From Fonticula alba ATCC 38817 (Eukaryota; Protista; Nucleariida), in NCBI GenBank assembly GCA_000388065.2, contig KB932201.1: a DNA stretch of 64,000 nucleotides. The stretch is one strand, 5' to 3'. Numbering within the stretch: position 1 is the first letter of the stretch; every line of letters starts with the position of its first letter. The position numbers and the translations under genes are program-made. Below the pieces are notes generated by a model that saw only the letters and a program-made list of their open reading frames with translations, searched no databases and was not told the origin of the DNA. Below, one piece after another: positions 11,822-61,926 of the stretch.

Positions 11822-12143
11822 NNNNNNNNNNNNNNNNNNNNNNNNNNNNNNNNNNNNNNNNNNNNNNNNNNNNNNNNNNNNNNNNNNNNNNNNNNNNNNN
11901 NNNNNNNNNNNNNNNNNNNNNNNNNNNNNNNNNNNNNNNNNNNNNNNNNNNNNNNNNNNNNNNNNNNNNNNNNNNNNNNNNNNNNNNNNNNNNNNNNNNN
12001 NNNNNNNNNNNNNNNNNNNNNNNNNNNNNNNNNNNNNNNNNNNNNNNNNNNNNNNNNNNNNNNNNNNNNNNNNNNNNNNNNNNNNNNNNNNNNNNNNNNN
12101 NNNNNNNNNNNNNNNNNNNNNNNNNNNNNNNNNNNNNNNNNNN
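11822..12143. other. Assembly gap (N-run), the largest of about 9
   Basis: Other N-runs lie at about 13185-13265, 23602-23700, 32634-32662, 34057-34125, 36539-36689, 51404-51475, 60898-60997 and 61847-61872. Most are flanked by G or C homopolymers. Confidence 0.95.
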
Positions 12144-14557
12144 CCCGCCAGCGCCCCCCGCCCCCCCCCCTCGAGACGCCTGGGTGCATCACGAAGAAAA
12201 TGGAAAAAGCAAGACCCAGCAGAGAATGAACAAAGGCCTCTCCCTCCCGCGCGGTTCCTTCGCCAACCCAGGGAAGAGGGGGGTGTCAAGCGACAATCCC
12301 GCGTTCGGACGAGCGCCGGAAAATGCTGGAAGCTCTTGAGCAACAGGCCGGTGGCTGCACCACGCCCAGTGGTCCCGGCCGGGAGAGCGCACATCGACGC
12401 ATGCATGCATGCGTGCATGCATGTTTGCAAGGTGTGTCGCACCTCAAAGAGCGACCGGCCCGTGGCGATATCAGCCAGCATGGGGGCCGGTCTCTGTCGG
12501 GTTGTTCTCTTTCCTGGCGTTTCCCAGCGCAAGGGGGCCGGGGCGGGGTGAAACGCGCCCCGGGCGATACGGAGTGACCCGGGTCTGATCACATGTCCGC
12601 ATCATGACCAGGGAATGCTTAATTGGGAATATCGTGGATTTCCCCTCTTTCCTCCGTTGGCGCTTCCGCCCCCTCGCCCCCTGCTTCCGGCGATCGGAGC
12701 GGGTGCGGCACGGCCACTGACAGCTTGGGGAGGGACGCGAGGGGGGGGGCGGGGGGCGGGGGGCTTGGTGGTATCTTTCCGCGAGTAAGGGCAGCGTCTG
12801 AACTCCCGAGAATGCTTGGAAGATGCCAGACCCCCCTCAGAGCTCCCTTGCACTGCCTTTGCGTTTCTCGAGCACCAGCGGCGGTCATGACAAAGGGGAG
12901 GGGTTTTCTTGCGTCCTGTGTGAATGGGGGCATCCGTTCCCTGGCTCCAGGCATACACAACTGTGCCCTCCTCCACCCTTAATCAGAGAGGTGGGAGGGA
13001 GTAATTTGTCCCTCCCCTTGACCGCACAGGCGCTTGTCCTTCGGGCCCGTCTTCCGCTCGTTCCGACACCCGAGCAGGTCGTTCCTCCGGAGGTCGTTCC
13101 GCCCGAGGTCGCTCCTGCGCTGGCTTCACGATGCCAACGATCACCTGCGGACACTGACTTGAGAGTTGTGGATGGCTCGGGGGGNNNNNNNNNNNNNNNN
13201 NNNNNNNNNNNNNNNNNNNNNNNNNNNNNNNNNNNNNNNNNNNNNNNNNNNNNNNNNNNNNNNNNCCCCCCCCCCACGGCCCGTGCCACATCTAACCATT
13301 TTGTGGCACCTTGGCTGAAGGCCCAAGCTCATGATCAGGGGTCGTGCGATGTGCGAATTCGTCCTGCCACTGCGCCCATGTGGTGAGCTCCGGCGGGCCG
13401 GTCCCATCCACCTGCGCTTATGCCCGGCGGCTCGAGCGCGAGGGCCCTGTGGGGGCTGCTTGCTGGGAGGACGACCAGTCACACGGCACGGTCGAAGTAC
13501 CTCACCCCCTTCCGTGCGATCCGACTGTCCCTGCCCATCTTCCACCCTTCCACGAGCTGGTGATATGGTCATGGAGCGACATTGTCATCTCGGTGGTATT
13601 CTCGTCCGACGCTCACTGGCGAGGCTCCCCGGCATACCACAGCCAGGGATACCCCCGTTTCCTCTCTCCCGATCCTGTGCCCCCAAAGTCTTGGGTGTAC
13701 ACCACATGAAGGGGGGCGATGGTGTATAGGGGCATGATAGAGCGGCAAGGCCTGGCGCCACGTCCGAACGAGTGTCCTCCAATTAGACACGTGAGGCGGA
13801 GGGGGGTGGCGGTGGTGGTGGTGGTGGGAGGGGGACGGCAGTTACAGACATCCACCACCTCTGCGAGGGGACGGGGGGTATCCATGCCAACAACGACACC
13901 CGCCCTCGTCGCCAGAGGTCGGAAAACTGTGACGCATGCCACCCCAAGGGAATGCACTTCCCTTGACCTGGCTGTTTGTTTAAACGCGCCTGCCCTGGTA
14001 CTGGCCCCAGTCTGCGACAATCTGCCGAGTCTCCTGGCGTGTGCACACGCCGTGCGCACCTCGGCGACGCCGGGGCGCATCGCTTTTCGGGCCCCCAGAG
14101 GCTGCAACCTTTCCAGGTCCGGCAAGCAGCACGCTACAAGTACCAATGGGTAGGGGGGCAAGGACATGGGATCTAGCTTCAGGGGCCGAGGGGCGTGGGT
14201 GGGCTCGCGGTGGCGGGTGACGCCGGGCCGAGCACAAGGGCCCTTGCTCGGGGGGTTGTGGGGTAAGTGCGGGTGTCAGATCGCGGCTTTTATTTTTGAA
14301 AGCCCACAATTGCCTCTAGTCTCTTGTAACCACCTCCCTCCGTCCCGTCTACCTCTGCCCTTCCTCCCTCCTCGCTGTGGCCGATCTCGTGCCGCCTTTT
14401 TTTTTTTTCAAAAGTAAGAGCGGACTTCAAGACCTGCGAAAAGGAATATCCCCCTCCACCGAAAGAGCCCACCCTCGACTTTCGCTGTTGCCCCCTCTCC
14501 GGTTTCTCGTTTTGCTACCTCTCTGGCCGCCAGTGGCCCACCTGCGGGGAGCGAGCC

Positions 14558-23489: not shown

Positions 23490-24247
23490 AAGGACCCTGT
23501 GCACACCTCTGCCCCCTTTTTTTCTTCTCCCTCTTACTGGTTCTTCTCCCGCCACCGCTGCCGCCACCGCCTGTGTATTAGATAATAGTGACTTGTTTTT
23601 TNNNNNNNNNNNNNNNNNNNNNNNNNNNNNNNNNNNNNNNNNNNNNNNNNNNNNNNNNNNNNNNNNNNNNNNNNNNNNNNNNNNNNNNNNNNNNNNNNNN
23701 CTCCCGCCCTCACACCTGGGTCTCACAAGCCCGGGGCAGATGTCTGCCTGCTCTCTCTCCCCACAGGGGGATCGACTGCTGTCTCTCCTCTGCCGTAAGA
23801 AGAGGGGTGATTGGTCCGGATGGATACATGAAGGCCGGCTGCCACAGGGGGCGCAGGCACGAGGTGGTAGCGGGGGGTCTGTATTGTTGACCATTGGCTC
23901 TCCATGGCGAAGGGAGGGAGGGTGGAGGAGGCTGCGAAGGAAGGGAACATGTTGATGGGAGAAACAGGCAGCACACGGGGGCACTTAGCAGGCAACAAAG
24001 ACCGCACTGACCGAGAGAAAAGGCGAGGCCTCATTTGGTCTTCGACGACCGGATGTCCTTTTTTCCGGTTGCCAAAAGACACCCTCCTCGGACAGCAACA
24101 GGCTCCTGCTCAGGAGCCGCCTCGCGTGCGTGCGTGCGTGCGTGCGTGCGGCCGTCAGTTCGTGCTACCGGTCTGCTTGGTGCCCAAATACACTAAAACC
24201 ATGCCAAGTCTGTCCATGGGGGATAGGTGAAAGGGGACACACAACAT

Positions 24248-32440: not shown

Positions 32441-32853
32441 CAGTCTCTCTCTCTCTGGTGCGCGTGCCCCGAGACGAGCATGGGCACGTATAGGCCCATC
32501 ATCATCTACTCGAGCGCACGACCCTCCTCTCCTTGTCAGGGGGGACTCCCCTGCGTAGCTCCCTCCTCCGGGAGAGGCGCCAGGGTGCACGACGAGGAGC
32601 AAGAAAGGCAGAGCGAAGGGACCGCTCCCTCCCNNNNNNNNNNNNNNNNNNNNNNNNNNNNNCAGTCTCTCTCTCTCTGGTGCGCGTGCCCCGAGACGAG
32701 CATGGGCACGTATAGGCCCATCATCATCTACTCGAGCGCACGACCCTCCTCTCCTTGTCAGGGGGGACTCTCCTGCGTAGCTCCCTCCTCCGGGAGAGGC
32801 GCCAGGGTGCACGACGAGGAGCAAGAAAGGCAGAGCGAAGGGACCGCTCCCTC
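32441..32853. repeat. Near-identical direct duplication (~190 bp) either side of an N-gap; probable scaffolding artefact
   Basis: 32441-32633 matches 32663-32853 except for one substitution and the CT-repeat length. Confidence 0.85.
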
Positions 32854-33271: not shown

Positions 33272-34820
33272 CCCAGAGGGAGGATTGAGGTAACAGAGAG
33301 GGGAGGGGAAGAGGGGAGACCAATACGTACGTTACCCATCTTGTATTACTCTTCGGGACCTAGAATTTGAAAAACAAAAGCAAATCGAAGAGATGGAGAG
33401 AGAGCGCCCATGCTGGGGGCAGGTACTATGCCTTCAGATCAAACACAGCCCCGGCCGTGTCCCACCCCCCTTCGGCGCCTGGCGGCGCTGCCCCCTCCCC
33501 GTCGCCAGGACGCTCGCCCCCACCTCTCCCCCACCCCCCTGTCCGTCGGGGGGTGGGGGGGGGAAACAAGCCACGGAGGGAAGCCCGCTGCGCGGCTGAC
33601 CACCGCCACAGGCCTCCCCCCGCCTCCGCCCCTCTTCCCCCCCCTCCCCCCCCCCCGCTCCCACCCCCGGCGGACGGGGGAAGGGGTCCCACCAGGGGAG
33701 GGGGGGCTGCAGTGTTCCGTCCCACCGCCCCTGCAGGCCCCCATCATCCCCCATCCCCGCCACCCCCACCCCTTGCCGGAGGATGGGCTGGCACAGCCCC
33801 GCTCGCCCCCTGGAGAAACACCCTCCGTCGCACGGGCCCTCGCCCGCACCACGGACGGCACTCAGCCATCCGCTCCTGCAGGGCGAACTAGTTGCCTCAC
33901 CACCACCACCACCACCACCCGTCCCCCCGTGAACACGCATGCACACTCCTCCTGGGGGCCATCCCTCTCTCTGTCTCTCTCTCTCTCTCCTGGCCTTGCT
34001 CACCCGACCGGGGACCGACTGGCCGAGAAGCAGGCAAAAGGGATGCCCCCCCCCCCNNNNNNNNNNNNNNNNNNNNNNNNNNNNNNNNNNNNNNNNNNNN
34101 NNNNNNNNNNNNNNNNNNNNNNNNNNCCCCCCCCCCCTCCGGCCATCCCACCTTGCTGGCGTGCACACCGCCGTCTGCCGTCAACAAGGAGAATGTGGGC
34201 CGGCTCTCGGCAGGGCAGCTTCACCCAGCCCCCCGGCCCGGAAAGCAGAGTCCACTGGCACCTGGCCATCACCCCTTCGCCCGGCGAAACTTGGCCCATC
34301 CTCGCGCGCGTTGTTGAGCTGTTCCCCCTAACTGCGCCCCGGCCGTGTGCCCTGCGAGACTCCGGGCCAAGCCCTGGCTCGTGAACAAAGGAAAGCCCCG
34401 TCCCAAATCCCGCCACATACTTGCTGGATTATTTTCTTTCGAATTTGCCCAGCATCTCTCCTTCTTCCTGGCGCATTCGCTGTCGAGGCCTGGACCGAGC
34501 AAATGCCGTTGGCCCGACCACACGGCAAGCTCGATGTCGGTGTCACGTGCCCGACCTGAAAAACGAGAACATAACCTAGAAACTGAAATATATAAGCATA
34601 TATATCCTCTTAACCAACCCCCTGCACGAAAGTCGAGAGAAAGCCCAGCGAGAAAAGCGAGACGAGAGAGAGAGAGAGAGAGAGGGCCGCCGAGGGGCAG
34701 GACAAAGTGCCCGGTCCCCTCTTGCCGGGAGTTTATGCTGTTTCACAAAGGTAGTCGCGCGAAAGTAGAGGAGGCCGCCTTGGGCACAAATGACCGAATC
34801 CGGTTCGCGGGCATGCGTGC

Positions 34821-36689
34821 TCAGATGAGCGAAAGGAGCTGCTTGATGGCAACCGAAAGGCCATCCACCTCGGCAGTACCGGCATGCGTGGCGATGGCCA
34901 GGTGGGTGCTGCTGCAAAGAGCGCGATTGTGGCTGGCCAGGGCGGCGGCAAAGTCCCGAACCAGGGCCAAGATCTCGGGGCTGACATTGCCACGGCGCAT
35001 CCGCGGGAAGAGCCCATCAGAGGTGGCCATCGTGGGCGAGTCGCCGTCGGCGGCGATGCCAAGGCGCTTGTTCAAGTCCCGCACAGTGCGCGTGACGCGG
35101 GGGTCCTGTCATGAGGCCAGGCAGCGGGTGAAGCTTTGGTTAGGGAGCCAGATGCGAGGTATGGAGAGCCGGAAAGCGCATCAAGGTGTGGGGTTGGGCA
35201 TGTGAGGAGGCGATGGGGCATGGGAGGGTGTGTACCTGGCTTTGGGCCGCCTGCGCCAGGAAGCCGGAGAGAGTGCGAACGATCTCTTCGACCACTGCAC
35301 AAGCAGGCCGACACATGCATATACGGAGGAGCGGCCAGGGGAGGGGGGGGGGGAGGGGGAGCGGTGTGCGGGAACACCCGGCGAAGGAATACGGTCAGGA
35401 GACTGGGAGGAAAGAGCGAGGGAGTCACCCAGCGGGGGTACATACCTGCGTTGTCGATGGTGTACACCTTGGGCTGGGCCAGGGTCGAGGGGCGCTGGAA
35501 CGAGGACAGCGGCATGGCCGTGGTCCCAGTGGGGCGGGTGAGCTGATCATTGCCAAGCGGCGAATGCGGCTGCTGGCCACCGAGCGGGGGGCCACCCGGG
35601 CGACCTGGGGTCATGAGTCCGGGCACATGCGGAGGCTGCTGCGAGCCACCACCCGAAACACCGGCCATCATCGGGCGGTTGTGCGCCGACGGCGGGACAA
35701 AGGTAGCCACGCCCGGGGGCGGGGCCACGAAGGCCGGCTGAGCCCCGGTGGCCGAGGGCTGACCCGCAAAGAGGGTCGGGCTGGAGGTGGGCGGCTTGCT
35801 GCCAGTCGGAGGGGGCGGGGCCACGGCAGCCGCGCTCGGCGAAGTGACACTGGCCGCCGGGTTGAACAGCTGCACCGGCGCAGGAGCTGCGACTGGCGGC
35901 TGGTAGACGCCACTGCCGGCGCCACTGCCACTCATGCCACCGGCCGCCAGCGGGGCAAAGGTGCCAGTGACGGCGGGGCCCGGCTGGGGCTGATAGCCGG
36001 GGGCGGCCGGGCCTGGCTGAGGCTGGTACGGCTGGAACTGTTGCTGCTGGGGCTGCTGGGGCTGGTACTGCTGCTGGGGCTGGTACTGCTGCTGGGGCTG
36101 GTACTGCTGCTGGGGCTGGTACTGCTGAGACTGCTGCTGGGACTGCGGCGACTGGTAGTGATGCTGGGGCTGCTGCTGGGCGACCGGGGCGGCGCGCGCC
36201 GCCGGTGCCGGGGTCGCCGTGCTCAGGGCAGTGAACTTCTCCAACAGGGCGCGCAAGTGGGCCAAGGCGTCCGGCGTGCCGGGAACAGGGTTGCCCGAGT
36301 GGGATACCGCCACCTGCAGGGTGTGGCAGGCCAAATCCAGGCGACCACCGGACGCCAAGCGCTCCGCATGCTCGGCGAAGATCATCTGCACACCGACAGG
36401 GAGCCTGCGATGCGGGTTGAAAATGCCACATGAAAGGGGAACATGATAAGATGCAGGGGGCGGGGGGGTTGGTGAGTAGGCGGAAGTAGGAGGCCCGTGT
36501 GGCAGGAGCATGCCGGCGCTTTAGATGGGCTGGGGGGGNNNNNNNNNNNNNNNNNNNNNNNNNNNNNNNNNNNNNNNNNNNNNNNNNNNNNNNNNNNNNN
36601 NNNNNNNNNNNNNNNNNNNNNNNNNNNNNNNNNNNNNNNNNNNNNNNNNNNNNNNNNNNNNNNNNNNNNNNNNNNNNNNNNNNNNNNNN

Positions 36690-44387: not shown

Positions 44388-45785
44388 ACACCACGAGCTG
44401 GTGACACTGTTCTCCGTTCGCGGATTTCCGTGGCCGTCTTGTGTATTATGGGTGTCTCTTTTTTTTTCTCCCCTCTTGTGTTTGTGTATGTACTTGTGCA
44501 TGCTGGCCCCTTTTTCGTGTGGCGGCTGGTGTGCGCTTGTGGGCGCGCCACCCCAGTGGTGGGTCCTCGCGCCACACATGCACCCCCCCCCCCTCTTCCT
44601 CTCGGCCGGCCAGCCGGCCAGTTCTTCAAATCGGCCCCAAGACCCGGGAGAGGCCTTCCCCTCGGCTGGGGAGGCGCCTCTCCCCCTTGGGACTGGGCTC
44701 GGGGTGGAGAGGCGGTGCACACGTGTACTCCCTTCCCGTGTAGTGGAATCCCCATGTAAACGATAGATGAAGCAACACGTGAGTGAATTGCCACACGTGT
44801 TACATCGTGGGAAAGATAGCATCCCAGAACAGCATTCCTCGGAGAGGAATGCGGGGTAGAACAACAGCCAGGTGGCCGCCGAGGCCGAGCGGCATAAACG
44901 CTCGACCGAGGACGGAGATACGCGGGTGGGCGGGCCCAGCCGCGGGGTTCTCAGTTCCAACCCCTGACCGAGCCCAAAGGTCAAAAAGGGGGACTCTCGT
45001 TGAGAGCCTCCTGAGAGCGAAAGCCTTAGCAGCTGTGTGTCGAAGAGTATACGGAAGTATAGCCGAAGCACCAGTTAGGCCGACGAACACCTGTTCTAAG
45101 GCTTCCTCTCGAACCCTTTTTAACATCCGAGTTCCTTTCTATTTTCGCTTGCCACTAACTCGTCTCAAGCCGAGTTACTGACTCATCTGGTAACAGACGA
45201 CCGTGAACCGCTGGTTGGTATGTCCCCTCCTTCATGCCAAGAGGTTACTAACCAGGTGGCAGATCACACTGGTACCCTTCGTCAAGCCTCACTCACTTGA
45301 CTTAGGCTTAACCCGTGTGAACCCTGCTACATCCCGCCTTTGCATGGGGATGTCGGGGCTGGCACTATGCCTCTCTTTATCGCTAGCTCTCCCCTCCTCC
45401 CCGCCCGCCAATCCGCATGAATGCATGCGTAGGTGTGTATACTTTCATATATATATTTATATACTCCATCTTTCCCTTCGTGTCGTGTGTCCCCCCCCCC
45501 CCACCGCATCTCGTTTTCCTCTCTTGTGTCCCGTGCTGCTTCCCTCGATGGATGGCTCGCTCCCTTGGCGCCCCAATGCACTTGCAAATATCCGGGTCAC
45601 CCTGGCATATGAGCAAGCATACTACTTTCGCCCTTCTGTCTTTGCTCATTTCCTGCCCTCGCATCGTGCCGGAGGGTGCCATTGTGGTGGTGGTCGTAGT
45701 GGCGGTGGTTCAGGCGTTTTTTTTTCCCGGGTCTGCTTTTGGTGGCTGTTTCTATTGCAAGGCGGGTGTGTCAATCTTGCGGGGG

Positions 45786-46710
45786 TCAGGTCGACCGATC
45801 GCCACGGGCGGTCTCCGGGGCAGTGGTGGCAGTGGTGTCGGCCGTCGTCACAGCGCTGGCCACCTCCGGGCCATGCTTCGAAATGAGATGCCGGGTGCAG
45901 ACCGCACGAACAAGAGCAAAGGGCAGGTGCGCCCAGCGGCCCCAGTGATTGTTGATGCCCCAGACGGCCGCCGGGAATTGGGGTGACGAGATTCCGGAGA
46001 AAATCATGGCCACGGAATGGGCGATCCGATCGATGACATCCTGCGGCAAGAAGGCAGGGGCCTCTGGGTTGACTTGGGCATGTTCCTCCTTCACGACAGC
46101 CGGCATGGAGAGGATCGATCTATGAAAAGAGAGGCAGGGATGGGAGCAGCCATCCGCCAATGGACCCACCCATGCACGTGAGGGGGCGGGGGAGGGGGAG
46201 CAAGGGGCAGCGCCACAGAGGATGCGGGGGTGAGAGTCCGTTATGGTGGCGTTGAGGCGAAAGGAGGAGGAAAAAAAAAGAAGGAAGCAGCAAGGGGGGA
46301 AAGAAGGAGGAGGAAGAGGTGAGAAGTCAGGATTGGGCATACTTCAGATGAGTGGTGATGAACACTCGAACATCGAGCCAGAGCAGCACTCGATCCCGCT
46401 TGGACAGTTGCTGCAGCATCTCTTCCTCGGATTGGGGATCGCCAGGATCCGGAGATGGGCCGGAGGAGAAGAAGTAGGCATCATCATTCGCATCATCATC
46501 GAAGGGGATACCGCCGATGTTCTTCCCGGTGATCAAGTGCGACCAAGGCATCTGAGCAATGGCATCCTCAAGGGCCGTCTCTGTCGCATGGCCATTGAGG
46601 AGCATGGTGACATTGAAGGACTCCCGATCAGTCGAGGGGCCACTGCGATATCCGGCGAAGGTAGCCAGCTCAGCCATCTACCATGCGGGTGGATAAGTCG
46701 GTAGTTGGTG

Positions 46711-46764
<54 letters not shown>

Positions 46765-49483
46765 GGTGAAAGGGAGGGGAAGTAGGAGAGCAGAGCATGT
46801 GGCAGCGGAGAAAAACCCCGGGAGACGCGGCAAAAGAGAAGTGCAAGCGGAATCAGCGAGGAGGATTGCCCCTGCCCCCTCTCATCCCATGCCCAGAGAG
46901 GCGTCCAGATGAAAGACGCACCACTTGTGCCTGTCGTGACAGCCGGGCATCCAACGCGTCAAAGGCAAAGGTCAGCCGCTCAACGGCGGGCTCCTCTTCA
47001 CCGGGAGCGCCTGGGGTGGGGATTTGTCGGGAGGCCAGGCGCACCATGACACACGGCTCCGAAATGGTCAACACACGAGCCACAATGGGGTCCGCGCGTG
47101 GGTCGGTCGGAGGCCGAGGGGCTCGGGCACCGCGCGCCAACCTCGGCGGCTGCACAACGCCCAGGCTCGTAAGTTGAGCCAACTGGCTGAGGACGGCTGA
47201 GAGCCCGCTTGGCAGGCCGGCGACTGCCTGTCGAGCGTCAGCTTCTTGCGGCTGATCGGCGCCACCGCCGGCGCCAAGTAGGCACTGGCGTAGAGCCATG
47301 GAGCCGGCCGTGCAGGGAAGCCCCTCTGGGAAGTGCGTGGCGAGGAACTCCGCCAGGACCCAAGTGTCCACAGTCAACAGGAATTGCAAATCCGACATGC
47401 CGGTATCCAGGGGATCGGAGCTGCCCTCGGGTTCCGGGTCAGGGTCGGTCGCGGCGCGGATCTTCGTTCGACGACGGGCGCCAGCCGATCGGCGCTGGCC
47501 GGATGCCATGCGCCGAACAAGGAGGCCGGGCAGCGGAGCAAATAGCAAACCCACAGCAAGCCCGGCTGCTGGGTGTTCGCGTCCGATGCCGGCTTCCAAA
47601 CCGGCCAGGATCCCCGGGGCGAAGGTATTCTCGGCGAAGATGCGCCATGCCAGCAGATCAGCCGGCTGGTCGATCGGCCGGCCGGATGAATTGCGCGTAA
47701 GGTGTTCTCCAAGTGTGGCCAGCTCGGGGCCCGACGCGCGCAGACGCAGCAAGGCCGGTACCGCCAGACGCCGGAGCTGCCCGGGATCGCGCACCAGGAA
47801 AGTCACTCGCCGGGGAACCCAAGGAGCGGTCCGAGTCCCGGCACTCGGGCCAGCAAGGGACCCGGCCGCTGCGAGCAAATAGTCCAGGGCATACGAATCC
47901 ACATTGAGGGTGTGCTGCAAAGCGGCGGTGGGTGCCAGTAGAACCGGCCTGCTCCCCGGCACGTGAAGTACTCGACTGCCGGGGGCCAATGCCTCGCCCA
48001 AAGGCCCGGCTGTGGCATCGCCAAGCAGCGTGCACACATGGGCGAGTGTTTCCTCGCGGAAGCGCGACGAGTGAAAGCGTCCTTGGGAGAAGCGGGCAAT
48101 TTGGCTGGCCGTCTTACGGAGGGTGGCCATGGCATCGGCCGCGGCTTCTGGCAGGAGCAGCAGCGTCCCGACGCCGTCGGGGTCCAGCAAATGCGCCGCA
48201 TCCAACACCAGGCGATCGGGCGAGGGGGGGGCATTAAGATAGATGATCGCACGGAAGGCGCCTCGCCGGCGCTGGCGGCCCAACTGGGCGCTCATGTTGA
48301 GGCTGGTTTGGGGGGTGGAGATGACCACATTGACAAGGCCGTTGCGAATGGATGTCTATGCAGTAGTGGTAGATGGCGGACAAGGGGCAAGGGGGGGGGG
48401 GGGGGGGGGGGAGGGAGAATCAGAGCACAATATGGTCAGTCGGTGACCGAGGCCGACGGGAGGATGGTTGGTACAGATGGCGGAAGGGGGTGGCGGCGGA
48501 CGTACGGCGAGGCGAGCCCGTTCATCCAGGCTCATGCCAGCATGAAGGGACACACAGTGGCCAGCACGGCGCCGGTTGCGAAGCAGCTCAGCCAGCGAGT
48601 CAGCGGTTTCACGACGCTCACAAAGGACCAGCACCGGAGCCGAAGCAGGCGCCCCGGGAGCCGGGAGGCCGGGGGCCGGGGCCAGCTCGGGCAAGTTGCT
48701 CAGCTGCCCAGCGTCCAGGGAGTATTTGACCCCGAGCTCGGGATGTGGCAGCACCAGAAGGTCCAGGAGGAAGGCATTCCTTCGGGCGGTGGTGGTCATT
48801 TGGTGAGCGGGCATGGGGGAGGATGGCGGGGCGGACGCCTTGTTACGCACTGATTTGAGCAAGCATGCGCGGTGAGGGTCACATTGTTGGGCAGGGCCGG
48901 GCAGGGGAACACCTGGGGGGGAGTCTGCCCCGGGTTCGAGCACATGGTCCGGGCGGTCCACTCAAGCGAAGCCCGGCCAAGAGGCAGGGATGCTGACAGG
49001 ATGGTGGCCGAGTCCAGGCGAACTGGCCCCAGGTGGATGCCAGATCGCAGGCTGGTCACGGCGCGCAGGAATTCCGGTCTGTGTCGTGGTGTCAGGGAAG
49101 ATGGAGGGAGGCATGTGTGTGTGTGTGTGCGGGTGGGGGGGGGGGGGGGGAGAAATGGGTGGCGGAGGAAATGGCGGGCACAGAAAAGTGGGCAGCATAC
49201 TTGAAAGTGGCGGACAGCGGGTGAGCATGCTCACTGCCGGCAAGATACACGAAGGAGGCTTCGGGGAAAAGCCCGTTTCGGCCGGTCTCTCGAGCATGTG
49301 CCGCCAGGGTGCGGTCATGATGCAGGTGTCCGGCCATGTCTGCGGACCATGCCAGAAGAGGGCTATTGACACGGAGAGCCGAGAGAACAACCACATCAAC
49401 CGAGCGTTCAAGCAGGCGGGCCAAGAGCCCGGGCTACGGGTATGTGTGCGCGTGAAGTGAAGGGAGAGAGAGGGTGAGACAGA

Positions 49484-49514
<31 letters not shown>

Positions 49515-51276
49515 GGGAAGGAGGCAACACGACAATCAGCATGGGGCATTCAGGACGACGATGCACGGAGGAGGGGAGGGGGCGGGGGGGTGCCATCACA
49601 CGCACGGTGTCTGGAGATCCGGGGGTGAGCACACTCAGGCCAAGCTGGCGCAGGGCGCTGGCCTCTTGCTCGGCGGCTGGGTCGTCTGGAACGACGATAA
49701 TGGACAATGGCCGTGGCGCGCCGGTGGCCGCGCCAAGCTCGAGGCACCGAGACCGAAGCAGCAGGCAAGCAAGTCGCGCGGCCCGAGTTAGCTGGTCCAG
49801 TCGCTGGACTGTGTGGAGCAGGGCGCCCGCCCGGGCCCCATTAAACAAGGCCTCCAGGCAGGCCATCTCGGCTGGCAGTATGCGAAGAAAGGCAAAGTGT
49901 TAGCCTCCGAACGGACCCCCCCCCCCCCTTCCCCCCGAATCGCGAGCAGGCACACGGGCGCACAGCCAAGCAGGGGATCCTCGCCCAAGAGACCGGCCTC
50001 GCGAAGTACATTCAGGGCAGCCTGCATCTCGCCATCTCGGAGTGGGCCCTGACGCTGGCGCAGGTGGCTTTGAGCCTCAGGGACTGTCAGCCGACTCAGG
50101 GGAGCCAGCTCGAACATGGCAGCCGAGGCTAAAAGTTACACAGGGCGAAGGGGTGCATGTTAGCATGGCGCACGGCCACTCGACTTGCCAAGTGGTCGAG
50201 CAGGACACATCAGCAGGGAGGGAGAAAGGGAGAGAGAGAGAGAGAAGGAAAGAAAGAGAGAGGGAGAGAGCGAAGGGGCCGCGGAGGGGAAGAGGGGGCA
50301 TACCATCAGCGATGTCCATCCACTCGGACAGGTCTGCCTCAGTGCCGGAGCCAAACCCCCGGCGGAGGCCGGCCGGCGCATCGGGGTCCGCCTCCGAGGC
50401 GTGGGACTCCTCGATGTCGTCCTCATTTTCGATCTCAGCATCAAAATGTAGATCGGACTCGCTGGATGTCGGGGCACGGCGATCGTGCCTGGAGTTTGTT
50501 TTTTTGTTTTTTTTTCATCCGCCCGCCCCCAAACAAAGACATTAGCAGGAGGCAAGAGCGCGAGGTAAGATGCCGGAGGGCATATCACAGCAGGGAAGGA
50601 CATACCAACCAGAGGCCGGGCCTCCGGAAAAGCGCCCACCGCGAGCTGATCGACCGCCAAATCCGCGACCACGCTTGGAGAGGTTGAGGCGCTTGAAGTT
50701 TGCGGCTGGGCGTTTGGAGGCCAGGGACCCGAGGACCTCGCTGGTCGGCGACCGGGGAGCAAGATCTGGCGCACAGGCGGCCGAACGTGCTGTCGGGGCA
50801 CCATCGCAGGATGTGCCCTGCTTCGGGAGGCCCGAGCCTGACGCAGGGCTGGCAACACTCGACACTTGGCGATTGAGCCCGAGACTCGTTTGTTGTGCAC
50901 TAAACAGAAGATTGTCGGTGGGAAGTGCGGGAGTCGGGGTGGGATCGCGCAAGCCCGCCGATGGTGGCCCCGCTGCGCGGGCTGTTTCGACAAGGCTACG
51001 CTGGAGGGAGGACACCGAATCCATGTCAGCCCGAGGGCCAGTTGAAGCCGACTGGAGGGCAGGCACGGACGGGTTCTTTTTGACCAGCCCGCTGCCGGAC
51101 GCCAGAGATGACGGCCGACGGAAGTCCCATGACGTGGTACTGTGTGAAAGCGAGGCCGAGCCGGTACTGCCTGACCGGCCTAGACCCATGGTCGTGGCCA
51201 TTATTGGGAGCCGGGATCGGGCTAAACCGGCGGCCAAGGGGGGCGGCTGCCCGCCCTTGTTCGGCAGGCCAGACAT
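45786..51276 (-). CDS. RECQL4-like protein with degenerate helicase motifs (putative pseudo-helicase)
   Basis: About 10 exons that splice in frame with GT..AG boundaries. RECQL4-like segments in order: NFKRLNL, SIIVVP..EQEASALRQLG, FKPEFLRA, PALPNNVTL..AFLLDLL, VLVLCERRETADSLAELLRN, LHAGMSLDER, RAIIYLNAPPS, LDVRVFITT, and SVAMIFSGISSPQFPAAVWG..WGRWAHLPF. The start may lie further upstream, across the N-gap at about 51404-51475. Confidence 0.85.
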
Positions 51277-52228
51277 TTGACTCCAAGCCAGGGGAAAGGA
51301 CAGCAAGGGGGGGGGGGAGGGGGCAAGCGAAGGAGACAGGCGAAGGAGACAAGGGAAGGGGAGAGGAGGCGGAGACAGGGGCGTAGCCTGGGTCGTGGAG
51401 GGGGNNNNNNNNNNNNNNNNNNNNNNNNNNNNNNNNNNNNNNNNNNNNNNNNNNNNNNNNNNNNNNNNNNNNNNNCCGAGATCGCATCATGCCCCCGGGT
51501 CTTTGCCAGACGGAGTCCCTTGCCGGCGCCAGATCGTGACGGGCGAGGGGGGGGGGAGCTGGGAGGGAATTCAAAATCGAACGGTCTTGCGGTCTCGTGA
51601 TGCGAGGTCTCGGTAGCTAATCCGATCGCGTCGGTGCTGTTGGATGGCCATTGTGATGGACTTGCGATAGAATGGCCACCGGGGCGGGTGTCATTGCGCT
51701 CTTCTGCGCCCCGGGCGGGCGGGGGGAGGACGCCGGGGCAAAAGTGCGAACAAGCAAAGAAGGAGGCACGGCGGCAGACGAAGGGAGGACCGGGGGGACA
51801 AAAGAGGGACCAACCTCTGGGTCGCCTCACAACACCTCCCCCGGGAGTCCCTGGCACAAGAGAGTGAGAGAAAGAGAGAGAGAGAAACGATGTCGGTGTA
51901 GATTGGCAGGAGCGCGTGTGCATGTGTATTGACTTTCCTTCGCGCGGACAGATGCGCGTGCTCGCACGATTCTCCTCTCCAACTCACCGGCTCTGCGCGC
52001 CGCCAGCCTTTTCTCTTTCGGGATGGGGCGGGGGAGAGACAAGGGGTGCGGCCACAAAGAAGGACACAGGTGGCCCTCCTCGTTGCGCGGGCGAGACTAC
52101 AGAGGGCAAAAGGGCGAGCCAGCTCAGTGAGTACACATGCGAAGGCACAGGGGGAAGGAGGGAGGGGAAGTAATGCAGGAGCGGGAGAATCATCACGACC
52201 TCCCTCCCCTCCCCCCCAGAGGAACAGC

Positions 52229-52455: not shown

Positions 52456-55287
52456 TTAGAGGGTGTACAGGCGATGGTCGACGACGGCCGGCATGGGCTC
52501 CAGGGTGGTGGACAGCTCCTCCTGGATCTTCATGAGATTCGGCATGTCATGCGGGGTGACCAGGTTGACGGCAAGGCCCAGATGGCCGAAGCGACCAGAC
52601 CGGCCAATCCGATGGAGGTAGGTCTCGGCGGTGGACGGGAAGTCGTAGTTGATGACAACATTGACCGACTGGACATCAACACCACGGGTGAGCAGGTCGG
52701 AGCACACCAAGTTTCGGAACTTGTTCTCGCGGAAGTCGTTGAAGATGCGGTTCCGATCCTCCTGGAGCATCTTCGAATGGATGAAGTAGCAAGACAGGCC
52801 GAGCTGGGTGATCTGCTGGGCCAGATTCTCCACGCGGGTGTGGCTCCGGCAGAAGATAATCGACTGGTTGATGCGAAGCTTGGTGAAGAGGCTGTACAGG
52901 CACTGGAGCTTGTCGCGCTCCTGCATGTAGGCATAGTACTGGGTCACACCGCGCAGGGTCAGATCATCCATGAGGTTGATCATGCTGGGCTTGTGCATGG
53001 CCGCCGTGACGAAGTCCTGCACCGACACCGGGTAGGTGGCCGAGTAGAGCAGGAGCTGCGGCTTCTCCGGGAAGAGAGTCAGCAGCTGCTGGATGGCCGG
53101 CAGGAAGTCCTGGGAAAGGAGCTTGTCGGCCTCATCGAGGACAAACATGCGGCAGGCATTGAGCGACACCCGCTGGCGGTTGAAGAGGTCCAGCATGCGG
53201 CCGGGGGTGGAGACAATGATGTGCACCGGGCGCTTGAGGCGGATCAGATCGTCACGATAGTCGCTGCCACCGAAGGAGGTCATCAGCTCGACGGCCGGCT
53301 TGAAGTGGCGCGAGAGCTCCTTGCAAACGTTGCCAGTCTGCAGGGCCAGCTCGCGGGTCGGGACAAGGATGATGGCTGGGTGGGGTGGGGTGAGGTGGGG
53401 GGGGGTGAGGGGGGGGGGGAGGGAGGGGGGATGGTGGCGATCATGGAAGGACTGTAAGCGGGCAAGGAAGGGAAATGCATGGGCCGGCCCCGGTCCCCTG
53501 CTCAGGGGCGAGGGGTTGTTCCCGAAGCAAGGGCAAGGGAGCAGCAAAGGAAAGCCCCCTCCCCGGCCAATGTGTGCGCACCCTGGAGGTGGTTCGACCG
53601 GGTGTCCAGACGCTCGAGCACCGGAATCAGATAGGCACAGGTCTTGCCGGTTCCGTTCTTGGCACGAGCAATGATATCCTTGCCGGCGATGGCAATCTGG
53701 ATGGACTCCTCCTGAATGGGAGAGGGCTTCTCAAAGCCCATGGTGTGCAGGCCGAGCAGGAGCTCCTTCTTCAGGTCGAAGTCCGAGAAGTCCAGGCACC
53801 GGGTCCGGGTGACGTCCTCGGTCTTAAGGCGCGTGTCGACCGGGGGCCGGGGGATGTTGGAGAAGTCGTCCGGGATGTTGGGGCCGCTGAGGTCCAGCTT
53901 CTTGAGCGAGTCGGCAACGTGAGCGGTGCTGGGGGTCTGGCGCGCCGCCGGCCGGCCGCCGGCCGACGACGACGACGAAGAGGGAGCCACCGTCACAACA
54001 GTAGAGGTGACAGTGGCCGTGCCACCGGAGGGCGGCTGCCCGGCCTTGCTGGCAGCCACCGCGGCGAAGGACATGACGGCGGGCTTAGCCGGAGGGGCGG
54101 CGACGGTGGCGGGCGCGACAGTCGGGCTGGAGGTGGCGGCCGCGGTCTTCTTGTGGGACTCGGTGGACTTGCCATGGGCGGCAGCCGGCGAGGGAGCAGG
54201 AGTAGGAGCAGGAGCGGCGGCCTTGACCGTCGGAGCGGCAGCGGCGGCGGCGGCGGTCGGAGCAACGGCGGTGGCCGAAGCAGCAGCAGCAGCAGCGCCA
54301 CCCGCCGGAAGGGGCTTCCGGCGGCCGGCAGCAATGTCGGCCAGGGTCGGCGGGGCAGCCGCCCGAGCAGCGGCAGCGGCGGCCTCCTTGGCAGCGGCGG
54401 CCTCCTTGGCGGCCTTGGCAGCAGCGGCCTCCTTGGCGGCCTTGGCAGCGGCGGCCTCCTCGGCAGCCTTAGCGGCCTTGGCGGCTTCGGCAGCCTTGGC
54501 GGCCTTGGCGGTGTTCTGCTTGGCAGCGGGCTCGGCCTCCTTAACAGTGACCGCAGAGGCGGCGGTCGGGGTGGCGACCGGACGAGCACGAGTGCCGGCA
54601 ACGGCGGCCGGCTGCGAAATGACGGTGGGCGCGGCGGCAACCGGGACGGTGCCAGCCGGAGCCGGGCGAGCAAGCATCGGGCGGACACCCGGCCGAACGG
54701 AAGGCATGTGCATCTGGCTGGGGCCGGAGCCGGCAAAGGAGGGGTCCGAGTAGGAAACCGGCATGGCGCCGGGCATGCCGGTGCCCTGGAAGGCAGCCGG
54801 ACGCGGGCGAATGGCCGCGCCGCTGGCAGGCTGTGCCGCCGGAATCGGCCGCTGCTGGGGCGACTGCTTGACATGGCCGGTGGCAGTGGTGGCGGTGGTG
54901 GTCGGGGTGGCGGCCGGGGCGGCGGTCTGGGAGGCGATCGGGGCAGTGGTGGCGGCGGTGGCCGGGGTGGCGGCCGGGGTGGCGGTGGCGGTGGTGGTGG
55001 TGGTGGTGCCGGAGGCGGCAGACTTCGAGTTGGTGCTGGGGGCAGCAGCCGAGCGGGAGGAGGAGGCAGTGGCAGTGTTGCTGGAGGTGGGGGTGGCGGC
55101 ATCGGAGGCGCCGCGAGACGAGGAGCTGGAGGCGGCCCCGGACTCGGCCGGGGAGGAGACGCCCGAGGGGGCCGGACCGGCCGCGGCGACGGACGCCGCG
55201 TGCGAAGCATTGCCAGCACTGCCCTGCGCCCGGGAGGAGTAGTTGTTCTTGGAGGAGGAAGAGGAGGAGGTGGTGGAGTGGCCGTCA

Positions 55288-55327
<40 letters not shown>

Positions 55328-56024
55328 GCTGCTGCTGCTTGCTGCCGGCAGCGGCCGGCGAGGGGGCATTCTGCGGTGGGCCGGCGGGGAAGGACTGCTG
55401 CTGGTGCTGGGGCGCTTGGGTGGGGTGCTGCTGCTGCTGCTGCTGCTGCTGCTGCGGGTGCATGGGAAGCCCGGTGGTCGGGTCGATGGCGCCCGGGTGC
55501 ATGCCCATCATCATGGAGTAGTTGTAATACATGTCCGGCATGGGATAGTGCGGCATGCTTGGGTGGTGCATGCCCGGGTGGTAGTGGCTACCCGTGTGCG
55601 GCATGGTGCCCTGGCCGGTGCTCTGGCTGGTGCCAGCCGGGCCCATCATCGAATAGACCCCCTGGTGGCCGTAGGGCGACATGGAGGGGACCATCATGGC
55701 GGCGTTGGGGTAGGAGAGGTTGTACATGCCGGCCGAAGGGGGGGCCTGGTTGTACCAGTAGGGGACGTTGTGCCCGGCGCCGGACTGTGCGCCTATCGCG
55801 CCATAGCCGGCCGGATAGCCGGACATGTAGGGATTGGGATGGTACATGTGTGGCATGTGCTGCATCGAGGAGTGGGGGCCGCCCTGGGGGGTGTTGTTGG
55901 CACCGGTGTTACCAGTGCCGGGGGGATTACTGGCACCGGGGGCGCTGCCGGCGCCAGGGGCGCCGGGCATGGCCTCCTGGCCGCGACCTTGGTGGAAGTA
56001 ACCAGCGGAAGAGCCAGCTGACAT
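52456..56024 (-). CDS. DDX6: DEAD-box helicase DDX6/Dhh1 with a long N-terminal extension
   Basis: Exons 56024-53582 and 53375-52456. Motifs include [58 protein letters not shown] and [17 protein letters not shown]. Confidence 0.96.
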
Positions 56025-60696: not shown

Positions 60697-61438
60697 GGAG
60701 GGAAAGAGAAAAGGGCAGGGAGAGTGCTTGGGCAGGGAGAAAGGGAGGATGCCACTGGTGAAAACAGCTGAAGTCTGCGAAGGGCAGCAGGGGGGCGGGG
60801 GGCGGGGGGGGGGAGAGTCAACCAAGGGGTCGGCGTCAAGGCAAATCTTGGGAGCAGGGGGGCAATCGGCCTATACGAGCGGGAAGGAGGAGGGGGGNNN
60901 NNNNNNNNNNNNNNNNNNNNNNNNNNNNNNNNNNNNNNNNNNNNNNNNNNNNNNNNNNNNNNNNNNNNNNNNNNNNNNNNNNNNNNNNNNNNNNNNNCCC
61001 CCCCGCCTCGTGTGCCCCCGCGCCGGACAGACCAAACAAACCGCAGCCGATCCCCACCCCAAAGAGGGCCCCCGGGCCACGGCCGAATGTTCGTGACGGC
61101 CTTCCCGCCTGGCCGTCCACTTGCCCGCCAGCTCTCACCCCCCCGCCCTCCGCCCTCCGCCCTCGGCAGGCAAGCGCGGCGTGTCAGGGAGGAATTGCCG
61201 CCCGGCTGGCCGGGGGGGGGGGGAAGGTTGAGGGACCGGGAGCCGAAGGGGGTGCGAATGCACTTGGGGCTGGGCTCCGCCCTCGCCCCGGTGGAATCCC
61301 CTTCCCCCTCCTGCCGCGCGCGCGCCTGCCCCCATCCATCCCCATGCCCAGGGGGTTGAGGGTGTGATCCGGTCTCGAAGCGAGACAACACCGCCGTCAC
61401 CGGCCCCGCCGCCAGGCAGTCCCATGAGCCAGGGAGGT

Positions 61439-61469
<31 letters not shown>

Positions 61470-61926
61470 GGCCGGCGACCTATGGCTCGTCCGGCCGGCG
61501 GTGTCCGGGCGGCCCTTTTTGACATATCTGACACCCCCGGAGGGCGACTTCGTACCTCCGACGCCCTTCGCGGTCTGTTGGGGACCCACGAGAGCCCCCA
61601 ACAGGTCGTGTCCACCCCCCCCCCCCCTGCACTTATTGCGCCCTGCCCCTTGGCGCAGGCCCATCGGCGTGCCGGCTCGCGCCAGGACACACCCTAGTCC
61701 ACATTTCATCGGACGGATGGACAAGCTGCGCGCGGCGCCGGCTGACCCGATCACATGCGCAGAAAGTTCCATTGGCAATAGAGCGCCCTGCCCTGGTTAG
61801 ATTCTAACGGGCAGCGCCGTGTGCTCCCCCCCCCCCCCCCCCCCCCNNNNNNNNNNNNNNNNNNNNNNNNNNCCCCCATTCCCTCCCCCCTTCCCGTCTG
61901 CCCTTCCCCTCCCTCTTCCTTTGAGC

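Follow-up and report, generated by a model that had tools for sequence, protein, structure and literature searches.

A probable RECQL4-derived pseudo-helicase with a degenerate ATP site in Fonticula alba

INTRODUCTION

Can RECQL4, a helicase of DNA repair and replication, be maintained once the residues of its motor have been erased? This question is raised by H696_00256, a minus-strand gene in a 64-kb stretch of GC-rich eukaryotic DNA (64,000 nucleotides of contig KB932201.1, here called the window) from Fonticula alba, an amoeba that belongs to the opisthokont order Rotosphaerida. The purpose of RECQL4 helicase activity is itself still debated, as K525A mice are normal while truncations that take away both the helicase body and the C-terminal domain are pathogenic (PMC6636780). 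An initial annotation, made from the DNA letters, had described the gene as encoding an ATPase-dead RECQL4-type protein with a kept C terminus. Our analysis supports this description through a profile match to RECQL4, the retention of 1 of 18 ATP-site residues, the lack of alternative exons that could restore the motifs, and spliced RNA. The reading that we favor, with a probability of roughly 0.7, is that H696_00256 is a RECQL4-derived pseudo-helicase with an ATP-dead core that is maintained as a full-length expressed protein. It is a member of the known RECQL4 family and does not constitute a system of a new type.

RESULTS

The H696_00256 gene is intact and spliced

H696_00256 spans positions 45786-51276 and consists of 10 exons that together encode 1374 codons plus a stop, a coding sequence (CDS) of 4125 nt. 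The exons are as follows:

51276-50606, 50488-50304, 50128-49964, 49871-49606, 49433-49201, minus strand: exons 1-5
49078-48851, 48779-48506, 48355-46922, 46677-46343, 46119-45786, minus strand: exons 6-10

The initial annotation had placed the gene at 45786-50130. Exons 3-10 agree with that span, and the first two exons (1146 nt CDS) had been missed. Its statement that the exons join in frame without stops holds for the full model: the spliced frame is a single intact frame of 1374 codons with one terminal stop and no internal stops, compared to 23 and 36 stops when the spliced sequence is read in its two alternative frames. The translation is identical, letter for letter, to the database protein "hypothetical protein H696_00256 [Fonticula alba]" (1374 aa).

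Splicing was examined in four small RNA runs from 2012, obtained from the same organism and labelled "RNA?". GT..AG joints of seven of the nine introns were found in the RNA contigs, with no base differences:

46120-46342, 46678-46921, 48356-48505, 48780-48850, minus strand: RNA-confirmed introns, first four
49079-49200, 49872-49963, 50489-50605, minus strand: RNA-confirmed introns, other three

The two other introns, 49434-49605 and 50129-50303, are backed by splice signals and by the independent annotation, and GT..AG is kept at all nine. One RNA contig spans 49731-49871, which includes the Walker A region, and joins the upstream exon. The exact contig matches and the seven spliced joints indicate a genuine gene whose splicing follows the model and whose transcripts are present at low depth. 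As side observations, five of the nine donors carry a C at +4 (GTGCGT three times, GTGCGC and GTACGT once each) and the other four read GTATG[CT]; the introns contain (CA)n and (CT)n microsatellites, for example, at 46720-46790 and 49480-49535.

H696_00256 is collinear with RECQL4

A Pfam scan of the protein detected no DEAD match and gave a sub-threshold Helicase_C match (aa 631-688; 21.5 bits, E 3e-4; cut-off, 23.5 bits). Genuine RECQL4 proteins score 69-90 bits for DEAD and 77-86 bits for Helicase_C. Single-exon open reading frames (ORFs) returned the weak Helicase_C match alone. RECQL4 (5LST) was not seen when the exons or the whole protein were compared to the PDB by phmmer, the best matches being DDX41 and Hjm (E ~0.6). 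An NCBIfam scan yielded nothing useful, and BLASTP against Escherichia coli RecQ was not significant. The self match was the sole result of phmmer with the largest exon (491-aa query) against 1.84 billion representative proteins and of word-indexed searches for aa 1236-1350 (tail) and aa 628-735 (second RecA-like domain, RecA2). A search for related loci in metagenomes with the Fonticula gene returned nothing. A language-model search, taken as a lead only, placed RecQ and RecQ4 clusters nearest; its neighbors included one cluster from chordates, with a zinc knuckle, and one from plants, with an Sld2 domain. Finally, short PDB-verified peptides of human RECQL4 were matched by BLASTP at chance level (E ~0.01-0.1; one of them where expected, another misplaced) and were not used.

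We then relied on profiles. Metagenome contigs were scanned with a degenerate DNA pattern (47 nt) of the tail motif IFxGIxSPx[FY]PAxV[YW]G, which we take to be common to the Fonticula and human RECQL4 tails. The pattern retrieved 28 loci. All 28 showed the same type of C terminus, ending ~30 residues past the motif, and all 28 matched the tail of the RECQL4 profile on the matching strand; in 11 contigs of this set, upstream exons matched earlier profile positions in order. One locus (L015; 10324-13110, minus strand) contained an uninterrupted ORF of 928 aa with all RecQ motifs intact, the NYYKRLNLKRK motif, and the tail. With this ORF as the query, we collected 120 named animal RECQL4 proteins, which form the basis of the RECQL4 profile.

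Compared to the L015 ORF by BLASTP, H696_00256 matched in the tail (aa 1300-1335; E 2e-8, 47% identity), in the second RecA domain (aa 611-724; E 4e-5), and at the N-terminal motif (aa 189-249; E 0.23), and the three matches were collinear. A hidden Markov model (HMM) of 25 diverse RECQL4 proteins scored 28.3 bits in hmmsearch (P 2.2e-11 for the single comparison). Alignment to the profile of 120 animal proteins by hhalign gave a probability of 95% and P 2.4e-8, collinear from aa 175-1348 to columns 397-1336 of 1338, with an identity of ~17% over the aligned columns. When regions were aligned alone, hhalign gave the following values:

Core, aa 290-760: P 4.2e-9
RecA2, aa 560-760: P 3.6e-9
Tail, aa 1240-1374: P 1.9e-7
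N-terminal motif (aa 186-202 aligned): P 0.025
First RecA-like domain, RecA1: P 0.14
Middle, aa 760-1240: P 0.16
Controls, one reversed and five shuffled sequences: P 0.15-0.92

Because the controls gave P 0.15-0.92, against 2.4e-8 for the real sequence, the RECQL4 match is far beyond chance. By collinear homology, then, the protein belongs to the RECQL4 family, and the RECQL4-type identity given by the initial annotation was supported by the type of HHpred and HMMER profile comparison that it had proposed, as well as by the BLASTP match of the tail.

The tail-pattern loci themselves (L002-L029) are ends of host RECQL4 genes in coral, termite-gut, and other host-associated metagenomes. The L015 ORF and related RECQL4 proteins of ~830-1000 aa, the named ones being from eriophyoid and other mites, begin almost at the NYYKRLNLK motif and show no Pfam Drc1-Sld2 or zinc-knuckle match. 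This group may lack Sld2 region I; alternatively, the gene calls may have missed exons further upstream.

The ATP site of H696_00256 is degraded

We mapped the hhalign alignment onto the 120-sequence RECQL4 alignment and defined as invariant every column conserved in at least 95% of the sequences. Among the invariant columns that face a Fonticula residue, 49 of 143 were kept; ten further columns face a gap. The losses concentrate in the motifs, where 8/51 invariant residues were kept, compared to 41/102 outside them (Fisher p 0.003). At the ATP site (Q motif, Walker A, and motif VI), a single residue of 18 was retained. Motif by motif, the invariant residues fared as follows:

Q motif: 0/3 kept; F, R, and Q became E335, D336, and S341
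Walker A: 1/5 kept; T-G-x-G-K-S became C-L-L-L-R-S, aa 376-381
Motif Ia: 1/9 kept
DEAH and aromatic-rich loop: 4/12 kept; D became A494 and E became H498, with H500, S503, F506, and P508 kept
Motif III: 0/4 kept
Motif IV: 3/4 kept (C636, R638, R639)
Motif V: 2/8 kept
Motif VI: 0/10 kept; GRAGRDG faces a gap

The human RECQL4 sequences of motifs 0-I and V-VI were verified against PDB 5LST. The sites in question lie at these positions:

48919..49997, minus strand: degenerate first RecA-like domain, aa 330-560, exons 3-6; 17/58 invariant columns kept
49750..49815, minus strand: Walker A region, with HTVQRLD at aa 360-366 (49795-49815) and CLLLRS at aa 376-381 (49750-49767)
49066..49253, minus strand: Walker B and aromatic-rich loop, aa 490-511, split by the confirmed intron 49079-49200
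48173..48205, minus strand: motif VI site, LDAAHLLDPDG, aa 725-735, with GRAGRDG opposite a gap after aa 727

Replacements in RecA1 affect the Q motif, Walker A, motif Ia, DEAH, the aromatic-rich loop, and motif III. The initial annotation had paired Walker A with HTVQRLD. The loss of the P-loop stands; the pairing differs from that of the profile alignment, which treats aa 354-368 as an insert and sets TGxGKS opposite CLLLRS. With either pairing, GK[ST] is absent. At Walker B, FVYLAGSEHAHPLSATFKPEFL (aa 490-511) stands opposite FvCIDEAHClSEWSHNFRPxYL; D and E are lost, and H500, S503, F506, P508, and L511 are kept. Motif VI had been equated with LDAAHLLDPDG. Here again the arginine finger is absent, as claimed, under either pairing; in the profile alignment AHLL aligns with CHLFL, downstream of motif VI in RECQL4.

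Other exons restoring GKS, DEAH, or GRAGR, an outcome that the initial annotation had named as fatal to its interpretation, were also considered. The three minus-strand frames of 45700-51400 encode no G.GK[ST], DExH, DEAD, or GRxGR, and therefore alternative or hidden exons cannot restore the motifs and were ruled out.

In summary, the catalytic superfamily 2 (SF2)/RecQ motifs expected of a RECQL4 protein were not found, in agreement with the loss of catalytic residues first proposed from the letters. In human RecQ4, the substitution K508A in Walker A or D605A in Walker B abolishes helicase activity (PMC5490261). Judged by its residues, the helicase core of H696_00256 probably can neither bind nor hydrolyse ATP. 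A protein that is still an ATP-dependent motor and runs on non-canonical residues, e.g., with R380-S381 standing in for K-S and further arginines substituting for those of motif VI, would fit with the profile alignment insofar as the Walker A Lys column holds an Arg and the Ser is kept. We consider this very improbable: the P-loop glycines have become leucines, the D/E of DEAH and the Gln of the Q motif are lost, GRAGRDG is deleted, and one Walker A or Walker B substitution is already enough to kill the activity of the human helicase (PMC5490261).

Retention is concentrated in an N-terminal module, RecA2, and the tail

Outside the ATP site, the alignment defines four regions:

50620..50700, minus strand: NFKRLNLSK followed by an RGG box, aa 193-219, matching the RECQL4 NFxRLNLKxK motif and G/R-rich stretch
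48098..48918, minus strand: second RecA-like domain, aa 561-760, recognisably kept
46414..48097, minus strand: very divergent middle region, aa 761-1240, at the position of the RECQL4 R4ZBD; 4/18 invariant columns kept
45882..46019, minus strand: RECQL4-type C-terminal tail, aa 1298-1343, the best-kept block

The NFxRLNLKxK motif (aa 186-202 in the alignment) and the G/R stretch (RGG, aa 203-219) precede the core, as in RECQL4. In human RECQ4, the corresponding region (aa 341-480) is R/G-rich and arginine-methylated, which promotes nuclear localisation; arginine methylation also makes the polymerase delta-MCM2-7 association more stable (PMC13309783). Annealing, strand exchange, and G-quadruplex (G4) DNA binding are reported to be conferred on human RecQL4 by its disordered N-terminal half (PMC4227796).

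In RecA2, motif IV reads VLVLCERRE..LAELLR and is followed by LHAGM, and both the CERRE..LAELLR block and LHAGM fall on their RECQL4 counterparts in the alignment. Of motif V, the degraded form VVISTPQTSLNM is left. The segment CVSLHAGMSLDERARLATSIRNGLVNVVISTP (aa 658-689; ~48311-48556) can be aligned either to the RecA2 block YHAGL...G.LRVVVAT or to the RecA1 block ClHSnm...G.v.VLllSP. HMMER places it in RecA1 and hhalign in RecA2; the two RECQL4 blocks look alike. In the middle region, five invariant Cys/His columns of the zinc-domain region face S771, F773, T859, W911, and A915, a pairing of low confidence. The zinc site of R4ZBD consists of three Cys and one His (PMC5490261). Two of the five columns belong to the FxpCkC string.

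The RECQL4-specific tail (C-terminal domain, the last ~90 aa in the human protein) is strongly kept, as the initial annotation had stated: 6/8 invariant columns are retained, and hmmsearch scored the tail at 22.2 bits (P 1.6e-9), alongside the BLASTP and hhalign values given above. Upstream of it lie DVRVF (46345-46377) and a lineage-specific insert of 34 aa. The strings FKPEFLR, DVRVF, and AMIFSGISSPQFPAAVWG were present at the places first described and aligned to the matching RECQL4 columns. In human RecQ4, the last 92 aa raise the affinity for single-stranded DNA about four-fold and helicase activity more than five-fold, with the ATPase rate unchanged (PMC5490261).

We modelled the protein with AlphaFold2 (AF2). 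Without an alignment the model was unusable (predicted local distance difference test [pLDDT], 40). With a 58-row RECQL4 alignment, RecA2 (~aa 579-709) reached pLDDT 86-93 and the tail domain 83-96. When this model was searched with Foldseek, the PDB ranking was led by structures of the RecQ family (5LST came second), and in Swiss-Prot human and mouse RECQL4 were at the top, aligned up to their C termini. This fold comparison, related to the superposition suggested by the initial annotation, is partly circular, because the AF2 alignment was made of RECQL4 proteins, and the modelled fold is consistent with RECQL4 without being independent of it. Of the two RecA-like folds, RecA2 is backed by both hhalign and the model; RecA1, aligned as part of the collinear full-length match, was modelled with low confidence.

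No Sld2 region I was detected in the protein or the window

Sld2 homology region I was not detected in aa 1-185 (hhalign against the region I alignment, P 0.26). Pfam PF11719 (Drc1-Sld2) had no match in H696_00256 at E up to 10. A region I HMM searched against the six-frame translation of the 64-kb window gave a best E of 0.27, at an unrelated place. Of the genome search for an Sld2 that the initial annotation had proposed, the part covered here, region I in the protein and in the window, was negative. Immediately upstream of the gene lies one assembly gap:

51405-51475, no strand: assembly gap of 71 N, 129 nt upstream of the annotated H696_00256 ATG

No RNA contigs from the four small runs covered 50838-51400. 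The ~1.2 kb between H696_00256 and the upstream DDX6-like gene is non-coding in appearance. An upstream Sld2 exon was rejected on this account and on the result of the region I HMM in the window, subject to the gap before the ATG. A CDK-site-rich, Sld2-like N terminus (CDK, cyclin-dependent kinase) was also rejected: aa 1-290 contain four S/T-P sites, and the sole full consensus lies at aa 719.

The upstream neighbor, on the same strand (52456-56024, minus), is a DDX6/Dhh1-type DEAD-box helicase with intact motifs; its N-terminal extension is very long and abounds in Ala, Pro, Ser, and Gln. Nine runs of N mark assembly gaps in the window: that at 51405-51475 and those at 11822-12143, 13185-13265, 23602-23700, 32634-32662, 34057-34126, 36539-36689, 60898-60997, and 61847-61872.

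The extent of these searches bears on a further explanation, namely, that H696_00256 is a lineage-specific paralogue. An intact RECQL4 and/or Hrq1 would then reside elsewhere, and the present copy, freed after duplication, would have taken on a new or regulatory role, such as competing dominantly for DNA or partnering with the active enzyme. Duplication of an active enzyme is a common origin of pseudoenzymes, and our searches covered the 64-kb window only. A catalytically inactive yeast Hrq1 allele is reported to have dominant-negative effects that depend on DNA binding (PMC13586618), and by this example a dead RecQ4-family protein can still act on DNA. No second copy was found in the window, the helicase-core scan being limited to the minus strand of the locus, and the RECQL4-specific architecture is kept from end to end, as expected of an orthologue. 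We regard a paralogue as rather unlikely, although not so unlikely as to be dismissed.

DISCUSSION

H696_00256 is a homologue of an enzyme family, lacks almost all catalytic residues of that family, and is encoded by an intact, expressed gene; by its sequence it accordingly fits the definition of a pseudoenzyme. What it keeps is the basic NFxRLNLK and RGG module, the hydrophobic framework of RecA2 with motif IV, and the C-terminal tail. A scaffold or DNA-binding role is suggested by these parts. In the mechanism that we propose, H696_00256 would need no ATP: at sites of replication or repair it would serve as a platform that binds DNA or G4, anneals strands, or docks proteins, and it would do so through the RGG region, the surface of RecA2, and the tail.

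Several observations weigh against a maintained RECQL4 pseudo-helicase. No relative close enough for a ratio of nonsynonymous to synonymous substitution (dN/dS) was found, and selection on H696_00256 is for that reason argued indirectly, from the open frame, the kept splice sites, and the uneven retention. Transcript depth was low in the four runs, whose sole label is "RNA?". With the 71-N gap 129 nt before the ATG, the 5' end of the gene abuts an assembly gap and its true start is not secured. Neither RecA1 nor the 480-aa middle region could be aligned significantly alone, and the AF2 model is confident for RecA2 and the tail alone, with a mean pLDDT of 52. A role in replication initiation is unsupported by the sequence because Sld2 region I was undetected. 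Lastly, the genome outside the window may hold another RECQL4 or an Hrq1 that is intact, or an Sld2 encoded on its own.

Some of these points would also suit an expressed pseudogene, or a protein that drifts with little or no constraint on its way to loss, as happened in nematodes and most fungi. The extreme divergence (phmmer with the largest exon finds no relative among the 1.84 billion representatives), the stretches that do not align alone, and the low transcript depth are all compatible with it, and evolution has discarded the RecQ4 helicase part on several occasions (PMC3926958). However, 1374 codons have stayed open across 10 exons while the other frames are littered with stops, and the introns have kept their GT..AG borders, seven of them seen spliced. 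Retention is also uneven, with 6/8 in the tail and 3/4 in motif IV against 1/18 at the ATP site, and wiping out all motifs needs far longer than an unconstrained frame stays open. We therefore judge a pseudogene to be improbable.

We return to the RECQL4 pseudo-helicase. Next to the intact and the deleted helicase, H696_00256 would represent a third state, in which the motor residues are erased and the domain body, the RGG module, and the tail are kept, the latter three having been retained long enough for the remaining sequence to become unrecognisable. If selection were confirmed, the retained parts would mark those regions of RECQL4 that bear an ATP-independent function, and the protein, naturally dead, offers itself for binding and interaction studies. 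A bolder version holds that H696_00256 is the only RecQ4/Sld2-family protein of Fonticula and does the essential job of RECQL4 without an ATPase or a recognisable region I. This is a speculative proposal that we consider unlikely. If true, Fonticula would be a knock-in made by nature, from which the indispensable parts of RECQL4 could be read, and the conserved platform would comprise the basic RGG module, the dead helicase body, and the C-terminal tail.

Fonticula is placed outside Fungi. Since a chytrid keeps the Sld2-RecQ4 fusion and Fonticula lies outside that kingdom, the decay of its helicase would be a separate, parallel event; catalysis would have been lost within the Fonticula (Rotosphaerida) lineage, independently of the fungal helicase loss. 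The fusion of Sld2 and RecQ4 is ancestral, and the helicase part was split off or lost several times, in fungi, nematodes, placozoans, and euglenozoans (Gaggioli et al. 2014, PMC3926958). The chytrid Batrachochytrium retains an Sld2-RecQ4 protein, and the separation in fungi postdates the divergence of chytrids (PMC3926958). A direct intermediate of the fungal Sld2/Hrq1 split conflicts with this fusion and was rejected. The suggestion that H696_00256 is an intermediate in the loss of the helicase near fungi is thus unlikely in the strict sense.

Our literature searches found no RecQ4 among the described pseudohelicases or pseudoenzymes, which agrees with the initial annotation, to which no described RecQ4 pseudoenzyme was known, and no paper linking Fonticula with RecQ, Sld2, or RECQL4. 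The closest known system is animal RECQL4 (human O94761; 5LST). H696_00256 shares with it, in the same order, the NFxRLNLKxK motif and G/R stretch, an acidic linker, what are probably two RecA-like domains, motif IV (CxRRE..A.L.R), the HAG block, a long C-terminal extension, and the tail A.IF.GI.SP.[YF]PA.V.G...W. Unlike animal RECQL4, the Fonticula protein is without the Q motif, Walker A, motifs Ia, III, and VI, the D/E of DEAH, and most of motif V; it has no zinc knuckle or detectable Sld2 region I, invariant Cys/His columns of the zinc-domain region appear to be replaced, and it carries the 34-aa insert before the tail.

Yeast Hrq1, considered to fill the place of RecQ4 in fungi as its functional homologue (PMC5605238, PMC8701316), is an active helicase and by this description would differ from H696_00256. 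The helicase-less Sld2 proteins (fungal Sld2/Drc1 and Caenorhabditis elegans SLD-2) derive from the same ancestral fusion and have likewise abandoned catalysis (PMC3926958). However, they lost the whole helicase domain and kept region I, whereas the Fonticula protein has the dead domain and the tail, with no region I detected.

A likeness from genetics is provided by the mouse. Animals with ATP-binding-deficient Recql4 K525A are normal, and Recql4 truncations in which the C-terminal domain is missing as well are pathogenic and null-like (PMC6636780). In K525A, as in H696_00256, body and tail are present and the motor is dead, but the mouse allele is a single engineered substitution, whereas Fonticula shows a near-total natural loss of motifs in a very diverged sequence. 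Among other families, pseudohelicases have been described: yeast Utp25, which resembles DEAD-box helicases, and Deinococcus radiodurans PriA are described as having lost catalytic motifs while being retained for a structural or binding role (PMC9539457, PMC4504706).

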